64,000 nucleotides of DNA, taken from positions 1-64,000 of the forward strand of contig MQRK01255149.1 in assembly GCA_001938485.1 (NCBI GenBank), in the 5' to 3' direction. The DNA comes from Girardia tigrina (taxonomy: Eukaryota). How positions within the stretch are numbered: position 1 is the first letter of the stretch; each line of letters opens with the position of its first letter. The translations under genes were made by a program, and so were the position numbers. Below, in pieces: positions 2,496-64,000 of the stretch. Below the pieces are notes generated by a model that was not told the DNA's origin, searched no databases, and saw only the letters and a list, made by a program, of their open reading frames with translations.

Positions 2496-4614
2496 AATGG
2501 ATTTTTTTCTTCTCTTTTACCTCATCTATCCTTATTTAAACCACTTGCTGTTTTATAATAATGTTTCCGTAAGGATCTCTTTTGACATGTGGTGTTTTAA
2601 AATCCTCCCTGTGAGTTTTCCTATCTTTGTAACCGTCTACTGCCTTATCGACTGCTTTAAACTTATCTTTCAAATCTATTTACATCAGACCTATGAGGGG
2701 TTAATTTTAAATTTTTATCTCGCCTGAATAGTTTATTATTTTTTTTAATTTAAAGGGTAAAATATTTTTATGTTAATTTGCTTATTAAATATTTTAAAAA
2801 ATTAAAAATNNNNNNNNNNNNNNNNNNNNNNNNNNNNNNNNNNNNNNNNNNNNNNNNNNNNNNNNNNNNNNNNNNNNNNNNNNNNNNNNNNNNNNNNNNN
2901 NNNNNNNNNNNNNNNNNNNNNNNNNNNNNNNNNNNNNNNNNNNNNNNNNNNNNNNNNNNNNNNNNNNNNNNNNNNNNNNNNNNNNNNNNNNNNNNNNNNN
3001 NNNNNNNNNNNNNNNNNNNNNNNNNNNNNNNNNNNNNNNNNNNNNNNNNNNNNNNNNNNNNNNNNNNNNNNNNNNNNNNNNNNNNNNNNNNNNNNNNNNN
3101 NNNNNNNNNNNNNNNNNNNNNNNNNNNNNNNNNNNNNNNNNNNNNNNNNNNNNNNNNNNNNNNNNNNNNNNNNNNNNNNNNNNNNNNNNNNNNNNNNNNN
3201 NNNNNNNNNNNNNNNNNNNNNNNNNNNNNNNNNNNNNNNNNNNNNNNNNNNNNNNNNNNNNNNNNNNNNNNNNNNNNNNNNNNNNNNNNNNNNNNNNNNN
3301 NNNNNNNNNNNNNNNNNNNNNNNNNNNNNNNNNNNNNNNNNNNNNNNNNNNNNNNNNNNNNNNNNNNNNNNNNNNNNNNNNNNNNNNNNNNNNNNNNNNN
3401 NNNNNNNNNNNNNNNNNNNNNNNNNNNNNNNNNNNNNNNNNNNNNNNNNNNNNNNNNNNNNNNNNNNNNNNNNNNNNNNNNNNNNNNNNNNNNNNNNNNN
3501 NNNNNNNNNNNNNNNNNNNNNNNNNNNNNNNNNNNNNNNNNNNNNNNNNNNNNNNNNNNNNNNNNNNNNNNTTTTACCTTTTTTTACTTCTTTGAAAAAT
3601 TGTAAATAGCAAAAAATATACATATTCGTAGTGACTGCTAGAATCTTTGTACCCACATCTAACACTGTTTACACGATGTTTGTAAAGATTTCTATGAATC
3701 TTCTTGAATGTAAATCCTGAAAACAGTTCTGACCATCACTAATAATCACAAAACTTTACCATAAATATTGTAAGTTTCTAAAAAGTCCCGATAAGCAAAA
3801 AAAGAATATAGAAACAAAAGCAGTTAACTTTACCTATTTAAATTGAAATAAATTAAATGAAATTTTTTATTATTTAGAAATAATTCTCTTTTTCCGGCTA
3901 TTTACTGAGCGCATTTTATATAATTTGGCTGAGGATCATTGATATAAATATTGTTTTTTTTAATTTTAAGATTTTTATCCATGAGACGGATCAATACATA
4001 AAATAGGGAATTTGTTTTTGTGATTCAGCGATGCTTATTAATCTTGGTTTAATATTGAAAAGTTATTTAGAAATAAATTGAATTTTTAAATTTTGAACTG
4101 GCTTTAAGATTTGAAGTTAAATTGTAAGAAAGCAGATTGAAATTTAAAAAAAAACTAAAACCTTACATTTTCTAAAGAAGAATATTTAAATAAAAATTAT
4201 AAAAAAATACTAATAAATATCTCGGATATTGAACATATTGTTTTATTTTTTATCAGTTAGGGGCAACTTTCCTGACTGAACCCACCATGAGATTGTGATG
4301 TTTGGAGGTAAATGGACGATGTTACAGTCATTGATGTATTTCAAATAATCTCTCAAAATAAATTATTCAAATGAAAGTCTAGCAAGATCGACCTTTTAAA
4401 CCAAAACATTGTCTTTCAGTTGTTCAACCAATACCCGCAAATCACTGACTTTATCTTTAATTTTGGTGTTTTTCATGAAATCAAAAATTGGATTTTCTGA
4501 AACTTAATGTTTTTAACATTTTTGAGTCTGTGGAACCAAAAATATTACATAAGTTTCTTTCTTGAAATCTCAAAATCTTACATTTATCCTTGACTTTTAC
4601 TTTACAAAAAATTA

Positions 4615-7160: not shown

Positions 7161-7942
7161 TAGGGTTGCCTCATAAGTTTTGTCGTACGTATATATCTAT
7201 GTTAACTGCAGATATCCTTGAATCACATAAATAATTCTCATATATTTGCAATCCCTAATAAAATGTGAATTAGATAAAATAGCATTTGCGATCTACTTAT
7301 GTCCGATAATTTTTATTTTCTGTTCTAAATGAATTTTTGTTTTAATAAAATAATAACATTTTTGTAAATTTCGCACATTTTTATCATTCTAATGTATTTT
7401 AATCGCTCTGATATTCTAAAATTAATTTACTCTTCTTGAAAATGGATTTAACATCCTCACAGATGACTGATGAAATTAACACGGCCCTTAGAGTAAGAAG
7501 AGTCTCAAAAAGAACATGTGAAAGGCGTATTTTCAATTTTCGTGAAAACAACTTTAACACAGATGATCAAGTCCGCGAAGGGTGGCCCTCTCTTGACATA
7601 GACGAGAAGATGATCGAGTTACTGACTGAAGACAAGTGTGCAACAACGAGGAACATTGCAGAGGGAATTGATCAGGATAAAAGCATGGTGTACCGGTACT
7701 TGAATGCAATGGGATACCGATACCTGGAAAATTGCTGGGTGCCCCACCCTCTGACGCAACAGAACAAGGATAATCGCAAAAGAATTTGTCAACAGCTATT
7801 GGATAGTTATCAACGGAATGATTTCCTGTCCCACATCATCACCGGTGATGAGATATGGGTTTACTGGGACAACGAAGGCGCTTTCAACAATAGATCGTGC
7901 AGAAAATCAGATTTTTGCGACAAAATTTATGAGGCAACCCTA
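7161..7942 (+). mobile_element. Internally deleted mariner element
   Basis: 25-bp TIRs TAGGGTTGCCTCATAA(G/A)TTTTGTCG at both ends; ORF 7436-7948 has the HTH region, WVPHPL and IITGDEIW (first catalytic D); the rest of the catalytic domain is deleted. Confidence 0.9.
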
Positions 7943-9780
7943 TATTAATTTGTAATGCAAATATTTGTCAAAAAAGTATTAATTAAAAAATAAAATTCAG
8001 AAATTAAATACTTAAATTATAAACCTTTTCTAAACTCATTTTTAACAAAATCATTAATTTCAACTTTTTTCACATAATTGAGAATGGAAAACCGCTGACC
8101 ATAATATTCTTATTTTATATTTTAGATCACATACGGGAATTCATTGATGGGATTTCTTTTATTTTTTTATATAAAACAATCTTGAAAACGGATTATTTCT
8201 ATCAAGACAATATTAATTATTCTAAACCAGATTTGGACAGTGTACTCGGTACAGAGATGTTTGTACAAGGTACACTCTCAGTTCAAAACTTTGACAAAGA
8301 ATCAGGAACAAATAATATTTTTTTAATTTAAAATAAATTAAAATAGGAATTATATGCTCAAAATATTACTAAAAATTATTTTGATCCTTCTGATTGTTTG
8401 ATTTCAAGTGAATTTATTTTGAAAAAAAATATCAAATAATTTATAAATATAAAAATTATATTCAATGTAGACATAAAGATACTCCATAGATCCTGTTAAG
8501 ATGTGAATTCTGAAAAATTATAAAAAATATTATATGAATAAAAAATTAATTTAATTATTATTTATTTTTCACACTGATATCAAAACTAATTTGGGTGTGC
8601 GAGAAAATATTTTATATAACTGATATAAAAATGCATACATTGCATAGACACTATGTCATCTCCGTACACGAATTAGTAAGCACAAACAACCAAGTTGGAC
8701 GAGTAAAGTCAACCGATTTTAAGGATGAATTTTCAATTCTGATTTTGCGAGTCATTATTGATCAGACATCAAAACCCTTTCATAAACTTTCAAAATAAAA
8801 TAATAAAGCTGTTACAATATTTTCTATTTTTATTATACGTTGTAATAAATTAATCGTGTTTGACTTTAAGGATTTATATGTTTTTATTGCATTTGTAAAA
8901 ATTTTAAATTTTATTTTATGAAGAATATTGATTTTTAATATTTATTTATTATATTAGAAAAATTTTTATTTTTTTTATTATTGTAATTTTTATAAGTTTT
9001 ATTTTTTAGGAAAATTAAAATTCTTCTATTTTTTAAAAAACGTTTGCTTGTAAAATAATAATATTTTTTACAAATAGAACATTATGTTCTAAAAAACAAA
9101 TTTTGATTTTGATAATTCTTAATTTTTTGTGATTTATTTTTTTTATTCAATGAGAATTCTGATAATTTTCTATTTTTTGCTTCAGACTATTCATTAATTA
9201 TCTTCGAATTTTTAAATTTGTTCTTTTAATGGAAGAACCACCTGATGAAGTTCTGTCAAGAACAATACATGTGGTGATTTTTACTGAAATAAAAAATTGC
9301 TATTCAAATGATGTACATTATGAATTTTTATAAAGAGGAAATTCTAATTATCTGAGAAATTTTAAATGTTCAAGATAACTTTTTATTGATTCTTGATTCT
9401 ATGGTCTGCATTTTGAATTAACTTTATCACTTAAATCTTTATTTAAATATTAAAATATTTTAAACAAAGGTAAAAATTATAGATTTTTAAGGTTTTTAAA
9501 ATACTGTAGACATCAACATATCGTGATTAATATGTTACGTGTTGCATGAAATCGCGTTGAACGAGTTTTGGTGTTAGAGCGTGCGCAGTACGGTCGCGGC
9601 GTCCCAGGGGTGAAGAAGCACAACGTAATCTAACTACCCTCACCCTCGCTCCCTGACTCGCTCATCTCGATCGACAGATCTCTGCGGCTCCTCGCTCAAG
9701 CCCCGTACTCCGTTTCAAATAACTGCGACAAGCACTCATTCTCCATCATCTCAACTCCAACACAATCCGTCAATGTTGAT

Positions 9781-13423: not shown

Positions 13424-14400
13424 CTGATAACAGAGTGGGTCGTGCAGAGGTATGGCTGAGGTGAAATTGTGCCAATGGATGGTCTCGGTGTCGTGGGGGA
13501 GGACATACAATGGGGAATATCTAACCCAAAAATTCCTATGTTCTTTCGTCCATCGCGAATACTAACCTTTTTCAAAAAGGTAGACCGGTTGGTAAAAAAT
13601 GCGTTGTCGCATAGACTCGAGGAAGAAGAGCTAAAAGCTCAAATGTTAATTCATTGCATTTATGATGAAGATGTTGTTCGTGAAATTAAATTACGGAAAT
13701 TAAAGAGTGTCAAGGAAATATCTGAGTTCGTTGCACTCGTAGACGAAATAAACCACGAAAAGAAGAGCAGGATCAATGCTATCCGAAGTTATCGAGAGGT
13801 TGTTCAAAACAACAAGGCTCCTGAGGTAACTAAAAATGGGTAAATCAGAGTAAGCCGAGAAAACAACCCCCAAGAGAGGAATCAACCGAGTCCAAATGTT
13901 ATACTTCTCATCAACCAGGACATTTCAGCCGAAACTGCCAACAAAGAAGACCTGTGCAGTGTTGGAATTGTAAAGAGACTGGGCACATCAGTCGAAACTG
14001 TCCTAACATACAGCCATTGGTTTGTTTCTTGTGTGGAAAAAAGGGACATAAGCGAACTCAATGTCCAGAGATACGCTGTGAAAAATGTGGCCAGAATGGG
14101 CATCTAGCAGCGGCATGTTTAGTGAACTCTAGCAGACAGAATTATGGTTACGACAATGGAAGATCGAGAATGCAGAACAATGATCAAAAATTTAAAATCA
14201 ACACGATGAACGAAGATGAAGAACGCACATTTGATGATAATGAAGAAAAAAACGACAAGACGTACCCAAACCACTGGGCTCCGCCAATTGGAGAGTTGGT
14301 GGGAGCCGAGTACCACTGATCTTAGAAGATAATTCCCACGGATTCGGATGCGAGCTGGATGTGCGAACGATGTATAAGGTCTATGGATTTGTGAAAAAGA
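13424..14400 (+). mobile_element. Ty3/Gypsy-type LTR retrotransposon gag remnant with three CCHC zinc knuckles
   Basis: ORF 13954-14319: CWNCKETGHISRNC, CFLCGKKGHKRTQC, CEKCGQNGHLAAAC; upstream gag-like ORF 13469-13843. The segment starts tgataacagagtggg, also seen at ~20194. Confidence 0.75.
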
Positions 14401-14677: not shown

Positions 14678-15539
14678 AATTATATAAAAAAAGCTTTAAT
14701 CAAATTATATTTTCGAAATATAATTTTTTATATATATAATTTTATATATAATTTACTATATATAATTTAAATATAATAATTAACTGGGTGACTACACTAT
14801 ATATATATATATATATNNNNNNNNNNNNNNNNNNNNNNNNNNNNNNNNNNNNNNNNNNNNNNNNNNNNNNNNNNNNNNNNNNNNNNNNNNNNNNNNNNNN
14901 NNNNNNNNNNNNNNNNNNNNNNNNNNNNNNNNNNNNNNNNNNNNNNNNNNNNNNNNNNNNNNNNNNNNNNNNNNNNNNNNNNNNNNNNNNNNNNNNNNNN
15001 NNNNNTAGGTTTCGGTATAATTAAATATTTACAAACTATCAAAAATTTATATATATTATATTACATTATATTAATTAATTAATAATAAAAACATAATTTG
15101 TTAGTATATTATTTGTTTGATTATATCGTGTTTTTTCGCATGACTAAATTTAAAAATAATTTTAACAAAAGTACGAGGCCCTTCAAAGTAAATTTTCTCT
15201 TTGTAAATTAAAAACAAACATGTATGAAAGAAAAATAAATCACACCAAAGCAAAGAGGTTGAGATAATTTAAAAAATAATTTTTAATACAATATTTGCAT
15301 GTACTACCCTCAAAACCAATAAACAAGTCACAATAGAAATGTTTTTGCCGGTTTTTGTAAATGTATAGGTCACAAATTATCTATGAGTTCTATATACAAA
15401 GCAAAGAAAATTTAAGTGCGTCGAACAACCAAAAAAATTACCAACTTTACATTGTAGCATCTTTTTAAATGAAAATTACATAATAAAACGAGTTATCATC
15501 ACTTCCTCTTTAGGTTCCTTTATAAAGTAAGAATAAAAT

Positions 15540-18147: not shown

Positions 18148-19430
18148 TATTAATTTTCAATTAACTGAAATCCCTCTTTGGAAATTGAACTTTTTCATCT
18201 TATATTTGGCTTTTTAAAGGTTTAATATTGTTCCATTTTCTCTCCATTTTTAAATACTTTTGATAATCCCTTAACTTGAAATTAAAACTTACAGCCAAAA
18301 CTTCTTTCCATATTTTCTAGATGGTATTGTTGATGACCCATAAGCTTGCATATTTATTAACGATAAATATTCTTTCTTTTTTCGAAAAGAAAGCATGTTT
18401 ATAAAAAAATCAGAAACTTAAAAAAAACGTAAATATACTATTTGAAATAATTACTTGTTACGACGACAACTACAATAATAATTATTTAATATATTTGTGA
18501 GGAGAATTATTATCGAAACTAATAATTGTATGTTGCGTAATTTATGTATGGAATGTTTGAGGTAAGATCTTTGTATTGTTGTGTAATAGGTCACGACCGA
18601 AATAGTGTGTATGGAGAAATGAATGAGTGTATGTTTGACCCAGATTGATGACGGCATTAATCAATATATATATATATACAGATGATATTCCTCATTTTAT
18701 TGTCTTTGAAATAAATTTTATGACAGTCTCGAAGTCTTCTAACAATATTATTTTTATATATTATTTTATATTTAAATGTGACAATCACTGGGAATTTCTT
18801 TTCAAAATATTAAAAATAATATTTATTAAAAGTATTTCTATTTCTGGAAAAATGTATATTTTAATTAAAAGTTGCATTAACTGAACTTTTATTGAATATT
18901 AAATTTTAAATATTAAATTAACTTTCAAAATATTAAATTACTGAGAATAATTTTGAATAAAAATTTTGAAACATTTTATTGTAAAACAATCCCTGAAATG
19001 CAATTAAAACAGTAAACAATCATACAGAAATTAATTAAATAATATATTTTAATTGAAGAACGTTTTTTTTATTTTTCAGTTTTATTATAATAAAATAAAA
19101 TTTTTTTTGATGTTTTCTTGAAATTTATTTATTTTTCTATTTTTATTTTATTGTAAAAAATAAAAACATATGGATATAAATAATATTAAAAATTATTTAC
19201 ATTAAAAAATTTTCAATAAATAGAAATCAGACGAAATTTATCGTAATCCATTGGGAACTGTCGGAAACGCAAATTTTGCGACTTATATTTTTATGGATTA
19301 AAATTTAATAATATACAAAAGTAAGTTTACGATTATGTTGAAATAAATAAAAACTTTAAAAATTATATATATATATATATNNNNNNNNNNNNNNNNNNNN
19401 NNNNNNNNNNNNNNNNNNNNNNNNNNNNNN

Positions 19431-19960: not shown

Positions 19961-20468
19961 ATGTAATGATTTATAATAAGGTTTNNNNNNNNNNNNNNNN
20001 NNNNNNNNNNNNNNNNNNNNNNNNNNNNNNNNNNNNNNNNNNNNNNNNNNNNNNNNNNNNNNNNNNNNNNNNNNNNNNNNNNNNNNNNNNNNNNNNNNNN
20101 NNNNNNNNNNNNNNNNNNNNNNNNNNNNNNTTAGCACGCCACGCTCAAAGATCTACTACTTGCAGTTGTAAGTAAACTATGATATATATATATTGATAAC
20201 AGAGTGGGCGCAGGACTCGCTCGATTGCAGTACCTTGTAGTCTGGGGACAGTGGTGGGATCGGGGGGAATAAAAAAATATGTCACATGGTTTATCGACGA
20301 TCTTAGACCCAATCTCTGTGCCCCCACTCAAATGTTGTCCGTTAACGAGCATCACACTTTTCGAAATAAATTGTTACAAATGGGTGTAAGGACTCTTAAA
20401 TGTCTTAATATGAGTTCTTTGTCTCGTTTAGACTGCCTCACGACGTCGATGTACACAATAATATTTGA

Positions 20469-49447: not shown

Positions 49448-50561
49448 TTAGGGGTACCCAAATGTTATGTCGTTTTTTATTGATTTTTATAAACAAAAAT
49501 AAAACCATATAAAACATTTATTTAATCAGAAAAATAGTCCCCATCGCAATCGATGACCTTTTNNNNNNNNNNNNNNNNNNNNNNNNNNNNNNNNNNNNNN
49601 NNNNNNNNNNNNNNNNNNNNNNNNNNNNNNNNNNNNNNNNNNNNNNNNNNNNNNNNNNNNNNNNNNNNNNNNNNNNNNNNNNNNNNNNNNNNNNNNNNNN
49701 NNNNNNNNNNNNNNNNNNNNNNNNNNNNNNNNNNNNNNNNNNNNNNNNNNNNNNNNNNNNNNNNNNNNNNNNNNNNNNNNNNNNNNNNNNNNNNNNNNNN
49801 NNNNNNNNNNNNNNNNNNNNNNNNNNNNNNNNNNNNNNNNNNNNNNNNNNNNNNNNNNNNNNNNNNNNNNNNNNNNNNNNNNNNNNNNNNNNNNNNNNNN
49901 NNNNNNNNNNNNNNNNNNNNNNNNNNNNNNNNNNNNNNNNNNNNNNNNNNNNNNNNNNNNNNNNNNNNNNNNNNNNNNNNNNNNNNNNNNNNNNNNNNNN
50001 NNNNNNNNNNNNNNNNNNNNNNNNNNNNNNNNNNNNNNNNNNNNNNNNNNNNNNNNNNNNNNNNNNNNNNNNNNNNNNNNNNNNNNNNNNNNNNNNNNNN
50101 NNNNNNNNNNNNNNNNNNNNNNNNNNNNNNNNNNNNNNNNNNNNNNNNNNNNNNNNNNNNNNNNNNNNNNNNNNNNNNNNNNNNNNNNNNNNNNNNNNNN
50201 NNNNNNNNNNNNNNNNNNNNNNNNNNNNNNNNNNNNNNNNNNNNNNNNNNNNNNNNNNNNNNNNNNNNNNNNNNNNNNNNNNNNNNNNNNNNNNNNNNNN
50301 NNNNNNNNNNNNNNNNNNNNNNNNNNNNNNNNNNNNNNNNNNNNNNNNNNNNNNNNNNNNNNNNNNNNNNNNNNNNNNNNNNNNNNNNNNNNNNNNNNNN
50401 NNNNNNNNNNNNNNNNNNNNNNNNNNNNNNNNNNNNNNNNNNNNNNNNNNACTAACTGAAATTAATAAATAAAAATGGTAGAGTCAAAATAATGTAGGCG
50501 GCAGTTAAACGATTTAGAAAAATATATCAAAAAAAACGACATAACATTTGGGTACCCCTAA
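49448..50561. mobile_element. mariner-type element spanning an assembly gap
   Basis: Perfect ~30-bp TIRs TTAGGGGTACCCAAATGTTATGTCGTTTTTT with TA on both sides; interior mostly N. Confidence 0.85.
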
Positions 50562-52725: not shown

Positions 52726-53589
52726 TTAAATATTTAAAGAATATATTTTTTTTTCATTTTAACTTAAATGTAAATATTTTTTGCTTCCTAATTTTATTCA
52801 ACTGCTACTGCTTACATACATATCTTAAATTCATGTCTTACGTTAAACTATAAAGACAAAGAATATTTATATTATAACACCACAAAATGAAAACTTATAA
52901 ACATTTCAATATATATTTTAACTGACATATCGTTCTCCTTATTATGTTGAGGGAACATTTCAAAATTTATAATTTATTATGTATTGTTTAAATTAATAAA
53001 TAAATATTGATAAACAATTTCATTTTTTCATAGATGGAATATTTATGATAATAAATATAAAATTATATTTTTTATATAAATAAATAAAATATGTAAGAGA
53101 ATTTGAATAAATAGAAGGAGAAAAGAAAGATAAATAATTATAAGAAAAGAGTAAATAATAAATTAAAATTAATAATAAAATTAATTAATTAATAAAAGAC
53201 CCAGTATAAAAAAGGTTATTATTAATTAACAAGTACAGAGTTGTTGATTTTAAAAAGTCAAGAAGTTATTTAAGGAGAATTTATTTAGTTGAAGAAAAGA
53301 AAGACGAGAAAGACTAGACGTCGTATCTAATTATTTGTTATATTTAAGCGAGCAAGAATCAAGAGTGCTCACACTTTCAATTTACACTGAAATAGTGTAC
53401 AATTTGTGAAACAATAACACTGAAATAGTGCAAACATTATTTAAAGTAATTCTTAAAAGATTATTTCAATTTTAAAGTTTATAAATTTATATTTATGTTT
53501 ATATATATACATATATAAACACTATGTAAAGTGTGGCCCAAACTTTAAAGAAATTTTAACTCGAGTTGTCGCTAAAGGCTCTGGGTGTT

Positions 53590-54240
53590 CCAATATAAAA
53601 TCGACCATGGGCCAAATAATGTGTGGTTTTGAATTGTCATGGAGCAATATGAAAGTCGACTTGTTTACCAAAAACGGTTGTTTTTCTTTGAGTTTCCGCA
53701 TCATATCTTCCAATTGGTTGCAGGAAGCATATACTGTGATCGACGAACCAGATTTAATGAAGTCATAATGGATTACACATGTGTCAGACCACCAAACACT
53801 CACCATCAGGTTCTTTTGATGAATGTGGTGTTTTGGACTGTGTCTTGGTGCTTCATTCGTGTCCACCGAGCTTGCTGAAAATTTGCGATTATCATATTGG
53901 ATCCCCTTTTCATCACAAGTGACGATTCGATTCAAAAGGTGATTACATTTAAAACAAGAAAACATCATCGTGCAAACATCCAAACGCTTATGTTCCTGCT
54001 TTTCACAGAACTCATGTCGAATCCACTTATCCAACTTTTTCACTTTACCAATTTTACCCAAGTGATTCAATATTATTTGTTTTGTAACAAGGAACGTTAG
54101 CGACAAATCATAAGGACTTGGTGATGGATCCAACTCCACGGTTACCTTCAGTTCGTCATTGACTGTCTGCGTTCTTGGACGACCCCGAGACTCATTATTG
54201 AGGTTGAAATTATCTTACACGAATCAATTTGAGACTTCCT
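53590..54240 (-). mobile_element. mariner transposase remnant
   Basis: ORF 53522-54139: KLDKWIRHE, RIVTCDEK, MVSVWW, LLHDNSKPH; truncated before YSPDL. Confidence 0.9.
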
Positions 54241-55180: not shown

Positions 55181-56618
55181 TAGAGGTGGGTACGTTTAGC
55201 GTTTAAACGACCGTTTAAACGTTTTCGTTTTTTAGGACGTTTATACGTTTAGCGATTTCTAAACGAGCGTATAATTATTAAATTTGTATTTTTGACATAT
55301 TTTTTTCATAAATGAAATAATTTTTTTTATTCGGCGAAAATTGCGCAATTCACGAATTCGGCAAAACAGATCATATTTACTACAGCTAAAAATTTTATAA
55401 ATAAAAATATCACGGTACCAAAACGGCCTGCTCCCTATTTTTGTAATTTGATTTATAGTCTATAAGAGATGGGCACGTTTTGCGTTTAAACGTTTTCAAT
55501 TTTTAAGACGTTTAAACGTTTAGCGATTTATAAACGAGCGTATAGTTCTTAAGTTCGTATTTCAAAACTCACGAATGGGTTATACTCCTTTAAAACTTTT
55601 ATCACGCTACCTAAGGCCTATTCATTTGTAAAGAACCCATTGTTTTAATATATTGAACTTTTTCGTGGGACTATAAATACAAAATATGAAAAGTGGCATT
55701 AATATCATATTTGAGAATTGCATCAAAATTTCCAGTAAATTTTTTTGATAAATGTAAAATTATTTGAATTATATTTGTTGATTTTCTAAATTTTTTCCAA
55801 TACAAAAGTCTTAAAAACGAGATGTATTGTATTGAAGAAAAGGTATTGGTTTTTGATGAAGCTTATAATTAAAATTTTCAATGTTTAATTTGCTAAACGA
55901 AGATCGTTTAAACGTTTATAAAATTTTAAAACGTACCCACATCTATCAATGCTGTTAGAGATCGTTTAAACGTTTTTTACCACGTTTTACTTAACTTGCT
56001 TTGGGTTCTGTCAGTCTTTCTGTTTGTTTGTGATGTTTCACTTTTCACACGCTTTTTTAGACCACTTCCACTCATCCGATCGTTCTGAATTTTTTTATGT
56101 AGGCTTTTCTTCTGCCTGACATTTTGAGATTTTAGCATCTCTGCATCTCAAAAATGCTCTAATAAATTCAAATTAATTAATTTTAATTTTATATGGACTA
56201 AATTAAAATATAAAATTTATAAAATNNNNNNNNNNNNNNNNNNNNNNNNNNNNNNNNNNNNNNNNNNNNNNNNNNNNNNNNNNNNNNNNNNNNNNNNNNN
56301 NNNNNNNNNNNNNNNNNNNNNNNNNNNNNNNNNNNNNNNNNNNNNNNNNNNNNNNNNNNNNNNNNNNNNNNNNNNNNNNNNNNNNNNNNNNNNNNNNNNN
56401 NNNNNNNNNNNNNNNNNNNNNNNNNNNNNNNNNNNNNNNNNNATTCAGAAATCCGCCCCACGTTTTTGGTTAGGTATAAAATTTCTCACATGTCTAGAAA
56501 AAAATTATTTTCCTCTTTTTAGTCCATATGAAAACGTGGTTTTTAAAACTTTTTTATTTTAAACGTTTAATTTGCTAAACAAAGACCGTTTAAAAATTTT
56601 AAAACGAGCCCACGTCTA
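55181..56618. mobile_element. Non-autonomous hAT element
   Basis: TAGAGGTGGG ... CCCACGTCTA termini, exact 8-bp TSD GTTCCAAA (55173-55180, 56619-56626), many subterminal cgtttaaacg motifs. Confidence 0.9.
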
Positions 56619-57068
56619 GTTCCAAATAGGAACTCGTACTTCATAGTTCGAATTTTTACCTTTTCCATTTTTTAAAAATACTGATTATTCAAACAAGTTA
56701 TCGATAATTTTAATTCATTTTATTGATGCATTCAATAGCCAAGATGTGTGGGAATCAATCAAAATAAAGAGCTGACAAACCAAGTGATGAGTCATTGTCA
56801 AATTATAACTGAAAAAAAATATTTTCACATTCTAAAACGTGTTTCAATTTCACCAAAAAAACAAACGAAATGACTTTCCAAACAGTCCAATATTTTTCAA
56901 GTTTAAATCAATAAAAAACGTTTATCATTTGATAGAGAAATAAACACTTTTTCCACCTACAAATTATAATTAAAAAAAACCACAAAACATTTTTCTTCCC
57001 TGTTTTTTTTGTTATTGATTTGATAATTCAAACTAATCCGATTTTCGTGTTTCGTATTTTCAGCCGAA

Positions 57069-57368
57069 TCACTGGCTGTCGACTAAAAAGGATTCGACCT
57101 GTTTTACCGAAACATGTTCTTGTGTTGATTCTGTGACCATGTCTAATTTTTCATTGAAAATCGCTTTTCGTAAATCGGAAATGATCCACGGAGACGCATC
57201 TTTGATCTCTTTGTCAGTTTCGTTTTCATACATCTTTAGTTTCTGGTTGAAATAGATTATCTGACTGATGGTGAAAACCGCTTCGTCACCGCATTCCGTG
57301 AAACGTAAATCAAAGTTTAAAAGAGAACGGTTATCGGTCATTCCTTCTTGGATTTGTTTGCCTCCATC
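57069..57368 (-). CDS. TCTE1: TCTE1/DRC5, last coding exon
   Basis: ctAG|DGGKQIQEGMTDNRSLLNFDLRFTECGDEAVFTISQIIYFN...* matches TCTE1 DGGKQLLEGMSDNKTLLEFDLRL; phase 0, 300 bp. Confidence 0.92.
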   Translation of the reverse strand, partial: DGGKQIQEGMTDNRSLLNFDLRFTECGDEAVFTISQIIYFNQKLKMYENETDKEIKDASPWIISDLRKAIFNEKLDMVTESTQEHVSVKQVESFLVDSQ

Positions 57369-57414
57369 CTAGTAAAAACTTTACCCGGGTATTTTCAAAG
57401 TGTGATATTCTTAC

Positions 57415-57558
57415 TGGCCCTAATCGATTATTCGACACGTCTATCGACACTAAAGAACTATTTTTTTCAATTACTTTTGCAATGATTGCCGCTGTCGGTT
57501 CGGACATTTCATTTGCGGCTAAATTTATGTTTTTCAATGTTGTGTTTATCAGAAGAGC
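57415..57558 (-). CDS. TCTE1: TCTE1/DRC5 internal exon (LRR)
   Basis: aAG|ALLINTTLKNINLAANEMSEPTAAIIAKVIEKNSSLVSIDVSNNRLGP|GTAAGA; 144 bp, flanked by 52 and 46 bp GT-AG introns. Confidence 0.92.
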
Positions 57559-57610
57559 CTTAATGAAATTCGAAACATGAGAAATAGAATTCGATATGAT
57601 GCATAATTAC

Positions 57611-57919
57611 TTTACAAATGGCTTGTCCTCCTTCGTCTAAGATTCTATTAAGTCGCATGTCGAGAACTTCTAATGTTGAATTTTTTTTAATCGCAAAAGC
57701 AATAGCTTGAGCCCCAGTGGTTTTTATCATGTTGTTTGATAGTTTTAGAACCTTTAAAATACTCCTATTGTTGAGGAGTTTACCTATAGCCCTAGCTCCA
57801 CGATCACCGATATGGTTGTGTGAAAAATCAAGTTCTATTAGATTCGGATGATCGAGGAGATGGCTGATAAGAACTCGACACCGGTCACAATCAACACGAC
57901 TTCTGTTGAGATGGAAAAC
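57611..57919 (-). CDS. TCTE1: TCTE1/DRC5 internal exon (LRR), missed by the ORF track
   Basis: tAG|VFHLNRSRVDCDRCRVLISHLLDHPNLIELDFSHNHIGDRGARAIGKLL...GAQAIAFAI...LDMRLNRILDEGGQAICK|GTAATT; 309 bp. Confidence 0.93.
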
Positions 57920-58215
57920 CTAAACGCAATTCAATAAGATATAAAAGTTACAATTTACAAATAATCAGTTACATTAAAAAGAATAAAAGATTTGGAAATT
58001 CAAAAAATAAAAGTCATTTCACAGAAATTTTATATTCATGTTATTTTATATATAACAGACTTACTTATGTACTCAGTTGTTCGGAGCACGACATTTTGGT
58101 GAGAAAAAATAAAGCGTAAAAATAATAAAAACTTTTATTTAAACTATAAATAAGCTACAAATGATACACATTTAAATTTCGCGGCCAATAATTCCATTTT
58201 GGCATTATCTTCAGC

Positions 58216-59145
58216 CAGTGGTGGATTTAGATTTTGGTGCGTGTGGGTGGGGGGGCGAGAAAACTTTCAGGGGGCGCCAAAAAGGATAAAGGTAGTACTA
58301 GTCCTACTAATTTTAATATTGAGTAAATACTATAATATACACGATTTGTACGCTCCCCGCTATCTTGTTCTAGCGGTAGGTAGCACCAAAAAATTGATAA
58401 CTATTAAAAATAATGAAGTTTTGTTGACCCGTCATTATTACCGACTTTTAATAATATTTGGGTTTACTCCGGCCGTAAAATCTTGCGTGAAGACGTGTAT
58501 TGTTAGTAGTAGATTTAGTAATTAAATTTTAATCTAATTTATCGATTACATATATGCAATATAAACAGTGTAATATAAATGTATAACTATTCCAATACTA
58601 TATTTTTTAAAGTAAAAACTGACTCGCTAGTTTATTTACTATTTAAATTGCTTTCTTCGTGATTTCATTGAAGCAAAACGATTTATTGTTGATTCAAAGT
58701 CAATCGTTTCTGCCACTTCACTTTCTATTGAAATTAGTGCCAATCCAGACAGTCGTCCATGTGTCATTGTTGACCGCAAGTAACTCTTCATTATTTTCAG
58801 TCTACTGAAACTTCTTTCAGAAGTTGCAGATGTAACAAGAAGGGTCAAGTATATTTTATAGAGAATTGCCGAATTGGGGAGTCCTGGAGCCATCTGTTTT
58901 TTAACTAAGAAAGACAGCACCTCTTACAGTTGTAATTCACAAGATAGTGATGGAGTTTAGTTAGTTAGTTCTTCTGCATCACAGACCTTGTGTCAGTTTT
59001 AAGGATGAAACTTAATCATAATGCAGCTAATTCTTGTACACAAAACTACACATTTATAAAAGTCATCTTGGGGGCGCCATTTAGAATCCAACAGGGGCGT
59101 AGGGGGGCAGTCTGACCCCCAGTTCTATAGCTAAATCAGCCACTG
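58216..59145 (-). mobile_element. Internally deleted hAT element (hATC dimerisation domain retained)
   Basis: TIRs CAGTGG(TG/CT)GATTTAG; 8-bp TSD tcttcagc/tcttcatc; ORF 58639-58920 TSATSERSFSRLKIMKSYLRSTMTHGRLSGLALISIE. Confidence 0.92.
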
Positions 59146-59599
59146 TCTTCATCTTGTTTACTATCATGGCAATGCGTATTTATCATTTTTATGAAATCGT
59201 AATTCAACACTGTACGCAATCTGACTTTGCACAACGGTCTTTGATCACATCGCCAAACTCCAAGGTATTATTACAGTTTTTTCTTCCAAAATCAAATGAA
59301 TATCCTTCATATATAAATAAATTATTATTTATAGTTTAAGTATAATATTGTATTATTTATACGCTTTAATTTTTCGCGACATGTCGCGTACCGTCAATTG
59401 CTATTGCAACAAGCCCTAATAACACTTGCAAAATTATTGAATAAGTTTAATTATAATTAGTTTCAATAATCTAATTATAATTATAATTACCCCATTTTAC
59501 AAATTATTTATTTGGAGAGTCAATTTCAATGGTAAAACTCTACGAAAGATTTGCTGATATAAACGAGTAGGTTCAAATTTCTGAGAACTTAATTTAAGA

Positions 59600-60150
59600 A
59601 TTTCTTGAGAAATCAGATCTTTAAATCATGATATTTATGTAAAAACGACTCGGTCAAAGATTTGGTCTTATCAATATTTTCCTCAAAACTTAATGGTTGT
59701 CTATGTGATTTAATTTTGATCGGTGGTCCTGTCTTGTTTATTCGATGTTTTATCAGTGCAGTAGATCCAACTTCCTATTTATGCTCCATAAACACTCCTT
59801 GATGCTTTTTTCACAATATCGAGAATCTTTGGTTTATTTGGCATCTGTATTGTCTTCAAAACTCTTTTAAATCGTTTCTCATTTTTCAATCAAATTTGGC
59901 TTCTAAAATACTTCTTAATAATAAAATTGGTCATTCTTTTTTTTCATTTTCTTTCTTCTTCCAACGTAACTCGATTTCGGACCCCCATGTAATTTTATGC
60001 CTTTTACTAGGTCTGGCTTTATGCTGTTATAACAATGAAAGTTAGATTAGTCTGTTTTTCTTAATATCTGCGTCCACCGATATTTTATCCATACAAAGCA
60101 AACTCAGGAACAACTAAATAATGTGCTGAAATCGCTTCCTTTTTATTAAG
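59600..60150 (-). mobile_element. Ty3/Gypsy pol remnant (protease-RT linker)
   Basis: VGSTALIKHRINKTGPPIKIKSHRQPLSFEENIDK at ~59670-59775; boundaries approximate. Confidence 0.55.
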
Positions 60151-60739
60151 AGTATTAAATAGAATTAACAATTATTATTAACAAGATTGCTTAACAGAAG
60201 GACAAAAATATTGGTATATCACTAAAATAAACAGGGATGTTTGGAGGAGAGAATAAAATTAAGTTACCTTGTAATTGGATGGATTTGAAATTTTTTACGA
60301 AGTAGAGTTTTGTTTAGTCAGAAGATTTTTTTGGGTTTCTAAATTTAATATTCATTGTAATCGGGAAAAGGAATTGGGTAAATTGTTTGTTTGGTAGATT
60401 TATTCGTTTTTTAGTCTATTGAGTAGCCAATTAAAGGAAATTCGGTTGATTTTCTTTAGGAAGAATCAATTGAGTTGCTGAACGGAGATCGAAAGAAAAT
60501 GTCTTTGATTGTTTTGAATGTTTAAAATCACAATGGGAAATATTAGTCGATGATAGTAATGATCAAAATATATTTGGGGTTGGCCAAAATATTGTCATGA
60601 TCTCAATTTTTGGTAAATAATAGTCTTATGAGAAAATTTAAGTAAATTGTAATGTTTGAATATTTTAGTTTTAAAATGTTTAATATTTATTATTTTTCAA
60701 TGATTTTTTTTCTACATTATAAAGCAATAATTATTTATA

Positions 60740-61918
60740 GGCTGTGTCGTAAAAAACGGAGTTTTTTTAAATACGTGTATTAATATAAACACTATAGATA
60801 ATGCCCTCCTTTCTCCAGAATAGATCTTAGGTCCATACACATATTTTCAGCAGTGCCTTTCATTCTCTCTCCATGAAATGTCGGCAAGTGGTGTCGAAGA
60901 AATATTAGAGAAATACAGTCTGTTGACACATGGCTTGACATTTGTTTGACGGTCCAATGGAACATAAGATAAATTCGACGTTTTTCGAACCGGATTATAC
61001 ACCGCCACATTGATCGACAATCTATCTCCGAGCACCAGAAGAAAGTGCGAGATTGCTCTCTTCCGGTGATGCTGCCCATGCCCAGTTCCAGTCATTAGAT
61101 CCTTTAGACGAGAGGTTGGATCACTTAGATGAACCAGTGCCGCAGATGTCTGCGAATAACCTCGATTATCGCCCGCATCAGAGGTTGCAATGACGGAATC
61201 GCAGTCAGATACAACTATCCGACAGAACCTTTCTGGATCAAAGGACGATTGATCGCCGAGTCTGTCGCGTGCATCCGTTATCGAATCGATTGAGTACGGA
61301 TTGTCGTCATCAATCAACATGATAATTTATTTTGGAGTATTTACTCGAAAGAAAGAGATAGCGAAATGTTCTTTATCGGAGATTATCGCTTTGTTCCCAA
61401 TGACCGATAAACAAGTCTCAATGATCGTCGCGAACCAGGGATTCGATGAGTTCGTATCGGTTGCCAGTAATACTCGTTTATAGCACAAAAGTTTAGCGCA
61501 ATCGATTAGAACTATCGTTCCAGTTGTTACATTATCGTTGAGAGAATTCTCATTATCACTTTTTTATGTTTATTATTAATTTCAAATTTATACGTCCATT
61601 CCATTTGAAAAAGGAAATCCAACAAACGTTTATTCTAATAAATTTTATTCGAAAATCAAATTATTTATAGTTTATCGATATTATTTAAACAATGGAACTT
61701 CTGGAATATTCCAGATATCAAACTTAACAAAACTTATAATATTTTTTTTACAGAAATCACACAAATAATTTTATAAACAAATATATATATATATATATAC
61801 TTTTTTAAATTAAATTCAAAATTATACATTTAAATCAATCAATCCGGCACACAGTCCATATTATAGAAAACCAGGCTATACGATGATTCAAAAAAACGCC
61901 GTTTTTTACGACACAGCC
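60740..61918. mobile_element. Non-autonomous TIR element carrying a captured Ku70 fragment (Pack-type element)
   Basis: 33-bp TIRs GGCTGTGTCGTAAAAAACGG(A/C)GTTTTTTT(A/G)AAT with 2 mismatches; flanks tatttata / tatatata (TA, or a degenerate 8-bp TSD); no transposase inside. Confidence 0.88.
60800..61604 (-). pseudogene. XRCC6: Ku70 5' portion (start, part of vWA domain, start of beta-barrel), disrupted and internally deleted
   Basis: MEWTYKFE.. (ATG 61604) /fs/ SDNENS..GTIVLIDCAKLL..NPWFATIIETCLSVIGNKAIISDKEHFAISFF..* IIMLIDDDNPY..FDPERFCRIVV..SRLKDLM..RKRAISHFLLVLGDRLSINVAVYNPVRK..VPLDRQTN..KYVYGPK/ILEK. Parallels Ku70 [38 protein letters not shown] / IMLFTNEDNPH / FDISLFYRDII / [43 protein letters not shown] / YGSRQIILEK. 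Confidence 0.9.
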
Positions 61919-62060
61919 TATATATAAATTATATTTTAAATTAAACTCGGTATCCTCTGTTAAAATATCTTCCCAAATAGTACGAGTCCCAATGGGTTTA
62001 TTGGTGTAAACTAAAAAAATAAAATATTTTATACGAGCAGACAAATAGACTCTACTTCTA

Positions 62061-63339
62061 TTAGGGTGAACCAAAAGTCTTTTCGTATTTTTTATTAAAA
62101 ATTTAAACATAATTTTACAACAAATAAAAAACATTTAAGTTTCAAAGTAAAGGCCATTTGAATCTATAGCTTGAACCCATCTATGGGCAAGTTGTGCGAT
62201 TCCGCTGCGGTACCAATCCTTGTACTTAGAAGCGAAGAACTGGTGACACCCGTTTTTGACCTCGGCTAGATTATTGAAGCTGCGACCACGAAGAAAGTGT
62301 GCCATAGAGCGGAAAAGTTGATGGCGCAAGATCCGGACTGTACGCTGGGTGTGGAAGAAGTTCAAAGGCGTCGAGATTTTTGATTTTTTCCTTTGTTTGT
62401 TTGGCGGTGTGCGGTTTTGCAGTGTCCTGTTGTAGAAGAACTCGCTTTCGATTGATCAAAGCGGGGTATTTCTCGCCAAGTGCTGCATACATTCGATCAA
62501 GTTGGGCGCAGTAAAGGTCAGTGTAAATAGTACGACAATTTAGAACCAGGTCGAAGTGAATCACGCCTTCGAAATTCCATCAAACACACAAAAGTGCCTT
62601 CCTTGAGAAACGATCTCGTTTCGCTACCGGTTTCGACATTTGTCCGGGGTCCAACCATTGATTTTGTTGGTCTGGATTACTGAAGTAAACCCACTTTTCA
62701 TCGCAAGTTACAATTCGACGGATGAAACGGTCATCGCGCGGATTTTCAAGCAATTTTCAACAAGTTTCGAAACGCTTTTCGGGTTGAATTTGCGTCAATT
62801 CATGAGGCACTTCTCGACATCGTCTATTGACATTGCCAAGAGCGTGAAGGTGTCATACAATGGATGTTTGAGGAATATCGAGCTCGGCCGACAATCTGCG
62901 AGTACTTATTGACGGATTTGTCTCGATGGCTTCACGAATTGCTCCGGAATCTACGGTGATAGGTCGGTCTGAACGTGAATTGGGCTCGAGGTCAATGTCG
63001 CCTTCGTTGAACCTTTTGAACCAATTTTGTGCAGTACGATTTGAGACCACATTATCGCCTTCAACTTCGCATATCTTCTTTGTTGTTGCAGTTGCGTTTA
63101 AGCCCTGTTTCCAGTAATGGCGTAAAAGAACGCGAATTTCAAAATTTTCCATGATTTTTCTAAAAGACCATAAAAATTATATTAACGACTAATTAGAAGT
63201 TTTAATATATATTGTGATAGAGCAGTTCAAGAGCTTTAAAAACATATAACACATGTATATAAAATATCTTTATTTGGTAATAAGAAACAATTGAACAAAA
63301 AGATATAGAAAATACGAAAAGACTTTTGGTTAACCCTAA
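62061..63339 (-). mobile_element. Near full-length mariner element (1279 bp) with a disrupted transposase
   Basis: TIRs TTAGGGT(G/T)AACCAAAAGTCTTTTCGTATTTT; transposase 63152-62135 in broken frames with VTCDEKW, QQDTAKPH, HPAYSPDLAPS. Confidence 0.95.
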
Positions 63340-63531
63340 TGTATCCAAATCCTTTTGTCCACAGCTTCGATATAATATCGAAATCACATAGAAATTATCA
63401 AAAATAAATTGCAATGAAACAATTAAATATCCAAATTTATAAATTCTCGGCAATTTTTTTTAAAATTCAAAAAATAATTTATAAATAATAAATTCATTTT
63501 GTTGAAAAGGTCAAAACATGTTTGCTCTTAC

Positions 63532-63750
63532 TTTTAGTTGTTTATTTGCAGCTACACATTTCGATAATTGCAGGCAATCGTTTATCGTGAACTGAAAGAT
63601 GTTCCATTCAAAATTCATACCGCAGTTTTTAACATCATAAGCGATTCTCAGTTCAGTTAAATTCGGCAATTTCGAAACAATAAAATCAAATGCTAAATGG
63701 TCTATTTTTGGCAATTCTTCTTCTATTTCATCTTCTTGTTCATCTTCGTC
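63532..63750 (-). CDS. TCTE1: TCTE1/DRC5 internal exon; upstream exons lie outside the window
   Basis: aAG|DEDEQEDEIEEELPKIDHLAFDFIVSKLPNLTELRIAYDVKNCGMNFEWNIFQFTINDCLQLSKCV...LK|GTAAGA contains the TCTE1 signature V.K.CGMNFEWN.F.FT..DC; 219 bp, phase 0, joins in frame to the exon starting at 57919. Confidence 0.93.
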
Positions 63751-64000
63751 CTTTTCAAAACAATGAAGAAATAAAAAAATTTAAAACAGATTTTTTAAAA
63801 ATCATTTTTTAATATTGTCAAAAAGGTAAATTATGAAATTAAAAATACAACATAAAAAGATGGTTGGACGTGATTTATATTTTTCATAATTGGTCTAATT
63901 GAACAAATAATGCATTCACTATTTTCAATTTAAAATTTTAACAAAAATTAAATAATTACGTAAAACATAAAAATACATAAATTTTATTAAACTAAAAAAA

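Follow-up and report, generated by a model that had tools for sequence, protein, structure and literature searches.

A unit of 1,179 bp bounded by a pair of terminal inverted repeats (TIRs), at positions 60740 to 61918 of the window (the whole 64-kb stretch of DNA analyzed here), carries on its minus strand a broken copy of the 5' part of a Ku70 gene. The explanation that we favor, with somewhat more confidence than doubt, is that the unit is a dead, non-autonomous cut-and-paste transposon, whose interior would have been filled, as in Pack-TIR elements, by DNA copied from a flatworm-type Ku70 sequence without introns. It has no coding capacity and most likely no function. The presence of Ku70 as cargo is a coincidence and not an adaptation.

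Terminal repeats, interior and genomic location

The left terminal inverted repeat (60740-60772, plus strand) is 33 nt long and ends in GGCTG; its counterpart, also of 33 nt, lies on the minus strand at 61886-61918. The two repeats agree at 31 of 33 positions, with 2 mismatches, and their outer 20 nt are identical. This terminal 20-mer occurs at exactly two sites in the 64-kb window, one at each end of the unit and in inverted orientation. With up to 3 mismatches allowed, it found no match in any of 100 dinucleotide-preserving shuffles, nor anywhere else in the window. The inverted repeats, which an earlier sequence-only reading of this DNA had described as near-perfect over 33 bp, are confirmed and are far above chance.

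The comparison of the flanks revealed a possible target-site duplication of 8 bp (or of the last 2 to 4 bp only), with a left copy at 60732-60739 and a right copy at 61919-61926. These 8-mers agree at 7 of 8 positions. With the same spacing, chance gives such a match in 0.2% of cases across the window, or in 4% if both 8-mers consist entirely of A and T. Shorter duplications, TATA (background rate of 1%) or TA (9%), fit equally well. The ends have the appearance of transposon termini flanked by a target duplication, the length of which is not fixable from one copy. The identity between the repeats collapses where the 33 nt end on the inner side, and beyond the outer GG there is only TA-rich sequence, an abrupt fall on both sides as is found at transposon ends. 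Together with the agreement of the flanking 8-mers and the arrival of other DNA transposons in the same intron (a mariner at a distance of 141 bp and the remnant of a hAT element), this argues against the absence of any transposon, i.e., against repeats that are relics of a local inverted duplication or rearrangement around an ordinary Ku70 pseudogene. We give little credence to such a rearrangement, which would suit a repeat pair known from one instance, a candidate duplication that is imperfect and lies within TA-rich sequence, and ends that match no superfamily cleanly.

A blastn search of the whole window found no second copy of the repeats. The terminal 20-mer also had no match in the JGI metagenomes, the GTDB genomes, and IMG/VR, which are collections poor in eukaryotic DNA, and a single copy is not thereby established. 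The presumed membership of the unit in a transposon family is deduced from this one pair of ends.

Between the repeats lie 1,113 bp, of which at least 671 bp derive from Ku70, in the range of 100 to 5,000 bp of non-transposon interior that characterizes Pack-TIRs. In the GC profile, AT-rich ends of some 60 bp and some 310 bp enclose a block of about 0.8 kb with a coding-like composition. The two AT-rich ends combined amount to about 375 bp, a length close to that usual for short non-autonomous elements (median transposable element consensus of 374 bp [PMC8277862]). On the right, an AT-rich spacer of 281 bp (61605-61885; GC of 0.08 to 0.32 in bins) separates the Ku70 start codon from the repeat. 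It may belong to the interior of the element itself, or it may be upstream sequence imported with the cargo, and blastn found no match to it elsewhere in the window except TA-rich low-complexity sequence. No transposase is present inside the unit, as had been claimed from the sequence alone: the pieces of the Ku70 frame lack a Pfam match, and the plus-strand open reading frames (ORFs) do not exceed 60 aa. Elsewhere in the 64-kb window, we found no transposase that fits the unit either, the Pfam domains being only of mariner, hAT, and gag types.

The unit lies in an intron of TCTE1, the flagellar gene of DRC5 (dynein regulatory complex subunit 5). The exons were compared one by one with the DRC5/TCTE1 of solved axoneme structures. 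An exon ORF at 63514-63780 (minus strand) matches residues 210 to 283 (E = 1e-16), and another at 57563-57919 (minus strand) matches residues 283 to 386 (E = 9e-31). Since these exons stand on both sides of the unit and cover consecutive residues, the unit is within a 5.6-kb TCTE1 intron, where the sequence-only reading had already placed it. The Ku70 fragment has the same orientation as TCTE1/DRC5. The mariner in this intron (62060-63340) is 1,281 bp long and has 36-nt terminal repeats (94% matching) and a minus-strand transposase in several ORF pieces, with the HTH_48 and Transposase_1 domains. The hAT remnant (58642-58923, minus strand) corresponds to the C-terminal dimerisation domain of the transposase (Pfam, E = 3e-11). 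More LRR-like ORFs were observed at 57072-57606 (minus strand).

Some minor features surround or overlap the ends. Each terminal repeat holds a 7-bp palindrome in an A/T run with a 3-nt loop (60751-60767 and 61891-61907), which does not fold more stably than shuffled sequence. The search of positions 57000 to 64000 against Rfam identified no RNA family. A 24-bp tandem repeat of 1.9 copies is located at 60651-60696, some 45 bp outside the left end of the element.

Identity and decay of the Ku70 cargo

The searches with tblastn, blastp, hhalign, and hmmsearch identified the cargo (60934-61604, minus strand) as a pseudogene fragment derived from Ku70 (XRCC6), which begins with the start codon, includes the N-terminal alpha/beta (vWA-like) domain, and extends about 30 residues into the beta-barrel. 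It corresponds approximately to residues 1 to 288 of the 589-aa Ku70 of the planarian Schmidtea mediterranea. Frames were searched separately, or with X at the stops, and no frame-joined, repaired, or consensus sequence was used. In tblastn, residues 1 to 286 of the S. mediterranea protein aligned to 60934-61604 in three segments and two frames, and blastp of the pieces against the same protein gave E values of 6e-16 and 2e-12, with identities of 36 to 43%. The comparison with an alignment of 18 Ku70 proteins by hhalign gave a probability of 97.9% (E = 4e-13) and covered residues 154 to 288 of S. mediterranea Ku70. The HMM of the same 18 proteins, searched against the minus-strand frame with hmmsearch, gave an E value of 1.3e-21. 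Columns 22 to 89 and then 225 to 290 of this family HMM were matched in Ku70 order, the Ku_N alpha/beta domain being followed by the Ku beta-barrel.

A stop-free piece of 159 aa matched only XRCC6 chains in the PDB (E of about 2e-3). Among 1.84 billion representative proteins, its single meaningful full-length match was the 589-aa "putative Ku70" of S. mediterranea, which contains the Pfam domains Ku_N, Ku, and Ku_C. Two further matches of the representative search were repeat proteins, matching by chance or composition, and were discarded. No longer relatives of the 159-aa piece were found in length-limited, word-indexed protein searches or among the 1.84 billion representative proteins. The HMMER check proposed with the sequence-only reading gave opposite answers depending on the model: the Pfam families Ku_N and Ku did not match the three stop-free pieces even at E values up to 1, whereas the HMM of the 18 Ku70 proteins was strongly positive. 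The Pfam miss is not counted as a refutation, because the searches specific to the Ku70 family were strongly positive, and these, with the PDB matches to XRCC6 only, substantiate the Ku70-like interior that had been claimed.

The best fit among the 60 Ku70 proteins tested was the planarian one. The amino acid identity to S. mediterranea Ku70, the only flatworm Ku70 compared, is 34 to 43%. Judging from these alignments, the cargo is of flatworm type, yet distant from the S. mediterranea gene, and its source is probably a flatworm.

The two borders of the fragment differ in clarity. At the 5' end, 8 of the first 11 codons agree with the N terminus of S. mediterranea Ku70 in tblastn, which places the beginning of the copy at the start codon (61604), previously called probable. 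At the other end, the stretch between the left repeat and the cargo (60773-60933, minus strand) is unassigned and perhaps represents a decayed continuation of Ku70. To the left of 60934, similarity to Ku70 was not significant in two minus-strand frames with blastp and hhalign or in all three with hmmsearch. A GC content of 0.38 to 0.42, comparable to that of coding sequence, continues to about 60800, versus 0.28 at the element end. This GC content and a short motif seen by eye across a frame change make a continuation of Ku70 to about 60800 plausible. The end of the fragment had been placed about 30 bp from the left repeat, which is plausible, although homology can be demonstrated only as far as 60934, at a distance of about 160 bp from that repeat. 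For the "YG..ILEK" endpoint proposed at the same time, the evidence beyond 60934 consists of the coding-like GC and the by-eye motif.

The copy is truncated at its 3' end and interrupted by two in-frame stops and two frameshifts, one of which was recognized by eye only. Two internal deletions remove about 52 and about 19 codons in comparison with a 522-bp metagenome relative (described below) and S. mediterranea Ku70. Since the truncation leaves about 50 to 55% of the coding sequence, the fragment lacks most of the ring-forming core, together with the C-terminal arm and the SAP-type tail at the C terminus; no intact frame spans them. With these frameshifts, stops, and deletions, the copy cannot yield even a truncated Ku70. 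This Ku70 copy is dead.

The fragment is collinear with the Ku70 protein and shows no intron across about 290 codons. We compared it with one annotated lophotrochozoan (mollusc) Ku70 gene, that of the chiton Liolophura, from which the introns of the flatworm gene may differ. The first 300 or so codons of the chiton gene gave nine separate exon matches, which implies at least 8 introns over that span. As the fragment is intron-free over a span interrupted by at least 8 introns in the chiton, its template may have been a cDNA-derived or otherwise intron-less Ku70 copy, a point that we treat as an indication only.

The only other relative in public collections is L001, a 522-bp metagenome contig (ENA ERZ2272602, positions 1 to 522, coverage of about 1), which is a more complete Ku70 relic with a DNA identity of 85 to 88% to the window copy. 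It keeps interior Ku70 sequence that is absent from the window copy, is intron-free over about 170 codons, and has in-frame stops of its own. A 27-mer common to the two copies had no match in the JGI metagenomes. Over their 116 common codons, the dN/dS ratio is 0.84, and the counts of differences by codon position are 17/11/16, an even spread; after their split, the two copies evolved by neutral drift. They have no disabling change in common in the overlap, and their ancestor may thus have been intact across it. The contig consists of cargo sequence without flanks and is silent on cargo travel between the repeats.

Possible routes to a Ku70-bearing element

In the explanation that we favor, the starting point would have been a short element with about 375 bp of its own sequence, 33-nt TIRs ending in GG, and a probable duplication of 8 bp (or of TA or TATA). 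A double-strand break or gap inside this element would have been repaired by copying an ectopic template, the 5' part either of a Ku70 gene or, with greater probability, of a cDNA-derived Ku70 copy that lacked introns. By this process, about 0.7 to 0.8 kb of Ku70 sequence would have been filled in. The unit would have sat, or landed, in the 5.6-kb TCTE1/DRC5 intron and undergone neutral decay. We infer the capture of the gene by the element itself, as well as its direction and junctions.

A cDNA-derived source, to which the intron-free 290 or so codons point, counts against this explanation and leads to an alternative with a minor, though appreciable, probability. In a nested insertion, a piece of a processed Ku70 pseudogene or a free cDNA would have been put later into a resident inverted-repeat element, with nothing captured or carried. 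The lack of introns in the window copy where the chiton gene has at least 8, and likewise in L001, would be expected from such an event, unless the flatworm parent gene itself has no introns there. Against it, the fragment retains its 5' end and start codon and lacks its 3' end, the opposite of the usual 5'-truncated LINE retrocopy, and neither a poly(A) tract nor an internal target duplication is found beside it. A point in favor of nested insertion is that animal Pack-TIRs are for the most part single-copy and did not arise by transposition (PMC8277862).

Base composition and the position of the frame are relevant to a different route, which we consider very improbable: the unit would be an internal-deletion derivative of a larger autonomous element that had a Ku70-like accessory gene of its own beside the transposase. 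The frame opens some 280 bp from one end and breaks off near the other, as internal deletion of an autonomous element would leave it, and it is intron-free, as transposon genes often are. The GC content of the Ku70 pieces (60850-61563) is 0.38 to 0.46, nearer that of the mariner pieces (0.39 to 0.46) than that of the TCTE1 exons (0.31 to 0.39), in samples that are small; the source may have differed in base composition. The identity of 34 to 43% to the one known flatworm Ku70 would also suit a transposon gene, and neutral decay accounts for it equally if the source organism is not S. mediterranea. Against a deletion derivative, we know of no eukaryotic transposon family encoding Ku, and the 1.84 billion representative proteins contain no longer relative.

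It is similarly doubtful that the unit is a decayed member of an amplified TIR family bearing the N-terminal domain of Ku70, the intact members of which would encode an accessory protein or decoy, or whose cargo would have been horizontally transferred with the transposon. Three weak hints, namely, the low identity to the flatworm protein, the mariner-like GC content, and the lack of a disabling change common with L001, are compatible with such a family, and none of them tests it.

Relation to known elements and to Ku70 function

Ku70 acts at the ends of cut-and-paste transposons and at excision breaks. In Drosophila, IRBP/Ku70 reportedly binds the inverted repeats of the P element, and Ku70 is said to take part in the repair of Sleeping Beauty excision sites. 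In contrast to these roles as a transposon-end factor, Ku70 is dead cargo in the unit, and there is no sequence link to the element's own transposition. The Ku70 cargo is not evidence of a transposon-host interaction. The sequence-only reading had suggested a truncated product that dampens nonhomologous end joining (NHEJ). This idea finds no support: the frame is truncated and broken in six places, the dN/dS ratio is neutral, the orientation is sense, and no second copy turned up in the window, the JGI metagenomes, the GTDB genomes, IMG/VR, or the protein collections. Because of the sense orientation in the host gene, any read-through RNA would be sense and not antisense. The unit has no bearing on NHEJ regulation, since the fragment is broken, truncated, neutrally evolving, and sense-oriented.

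The unit is best filed as a Pack-TIR-like non-autonomous element, and gene fragments in animal DNA transposons are an already known kind. Flatworms were presumably absent from the 100 UCSC-hosted genomes of the animal Pack-TIR survey. In that survey, Pack-TIRs were documented in animals as mostly single-copy elements resulting from transposition-independent gap filling (Tan et al. 2021, Nat Commun 12:4280; PMC8277862). They were defined by two ends of the same TIR element, each with at least 10 bp of the termini, and by a unique parental copy that is at least 90% identical, has a length ratio of 80 to 120%, and is not flanked by transposons (PMC8277862). The unit resembles them in having two matching TIRs, putatively of a short, transposase-less element, around gene-derived sequence of the expected length and in being apparently single-copy, degenerate, and intronic. 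It differs in that no parental copy with at least 90% identity has been identified, the nearest relative being L001 (85 to 88%), which is itself broken. It also differs in the repeat family, for which no consensus is known, so that the ends are compared with each other only. The third difference is the intron-free and maybe cDNA-derived cargo, which matters for the class: in the published pipeline, an intron-less copy of a multi-exon parent is discarded as a retroduplicate, and such a unit would be filtered out (PMC8277862). If confirmed in the source genome, the unit would add a flatworm example to the animal DNA transposons that bear gene fragments. The intron-free cargo, if confirmed, would bear on whether such fillings use cDNA-derived templates.

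Other classes share fewer traits with the unit. Plant Pack-MULEs are also non-autonomous elements with a host gene fragment between terminal repeats. Unlike the unit, they have long Mutator-type repeats and target duplications of 9 to 10 bp (the 9-bp flanks mismatch here), are often multicopy, and usually hold genomic captures with introns. Processed pseudogenes are, like the cargo, intron-free and neutrally decaying copies of housekeeping genes. They differ from the Ku70 fragment, which has kept its 5' and not its 3' end, has no poly(A), and is accompanied by inverted repeats and not by the direct repeats of LINE type.

The superfamily is possibly Merlin. Merlin elements have TIRs of 24 to 462 bp ending in 5'-GG and target duplications of 8 to 9 bp, and they are recorded in S. 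mediterranea (PMC8101967). The 33-nt repeats ending in GG and the 7/8 match of the flanking 8-mers agree with this description. These two features are generic, a TA or TATA duplication fits equally well, and no partner transposase with a DDE_Tnp_IS1595 domain occurs in the 64-kb window. We also considered other superfamilies. In hAT elements, the target duplication is 8 bp and the ends fit 5'-YARNG. The ends of the unit read GGCTG, which does not fit hAT, and the hAT remnant of the intron is a separate element. PIF/Harbinger, with a 3-bp TWA duplication, does not agree with 3-bp flanks of ATA and TAT. Regarding Tc1/mariner, TA is present at both ends (9% by chance), and the adjoining mariner has quite different 36-nt repeats.

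The window has a GC content of 27.7% and is dense in transposon debris. Fragments of mariner- or Tc1-like transposases were recognized by eye in the ORF translations at 7412-7945 (plus strand), 31554-32033 (minus strand), and 53525-54214 (minus strand). A retroelement remnant at 13460-14316 (plus strand) consists of gag-like ORFs with three CCHC zinc knuckles. Nine runs of N, which are assembly gaps or masked sequence, are found at 2810-3571, 14817-15005, 19381-19430, 19985-20130, 34229-34278, 38079-38128, 39237-39462, 49563-50450, and 56226-56442. The last of these is downstream of the TCTE1 exons at 57072-57919 and outside the 5.6-kb intron that bears the element.
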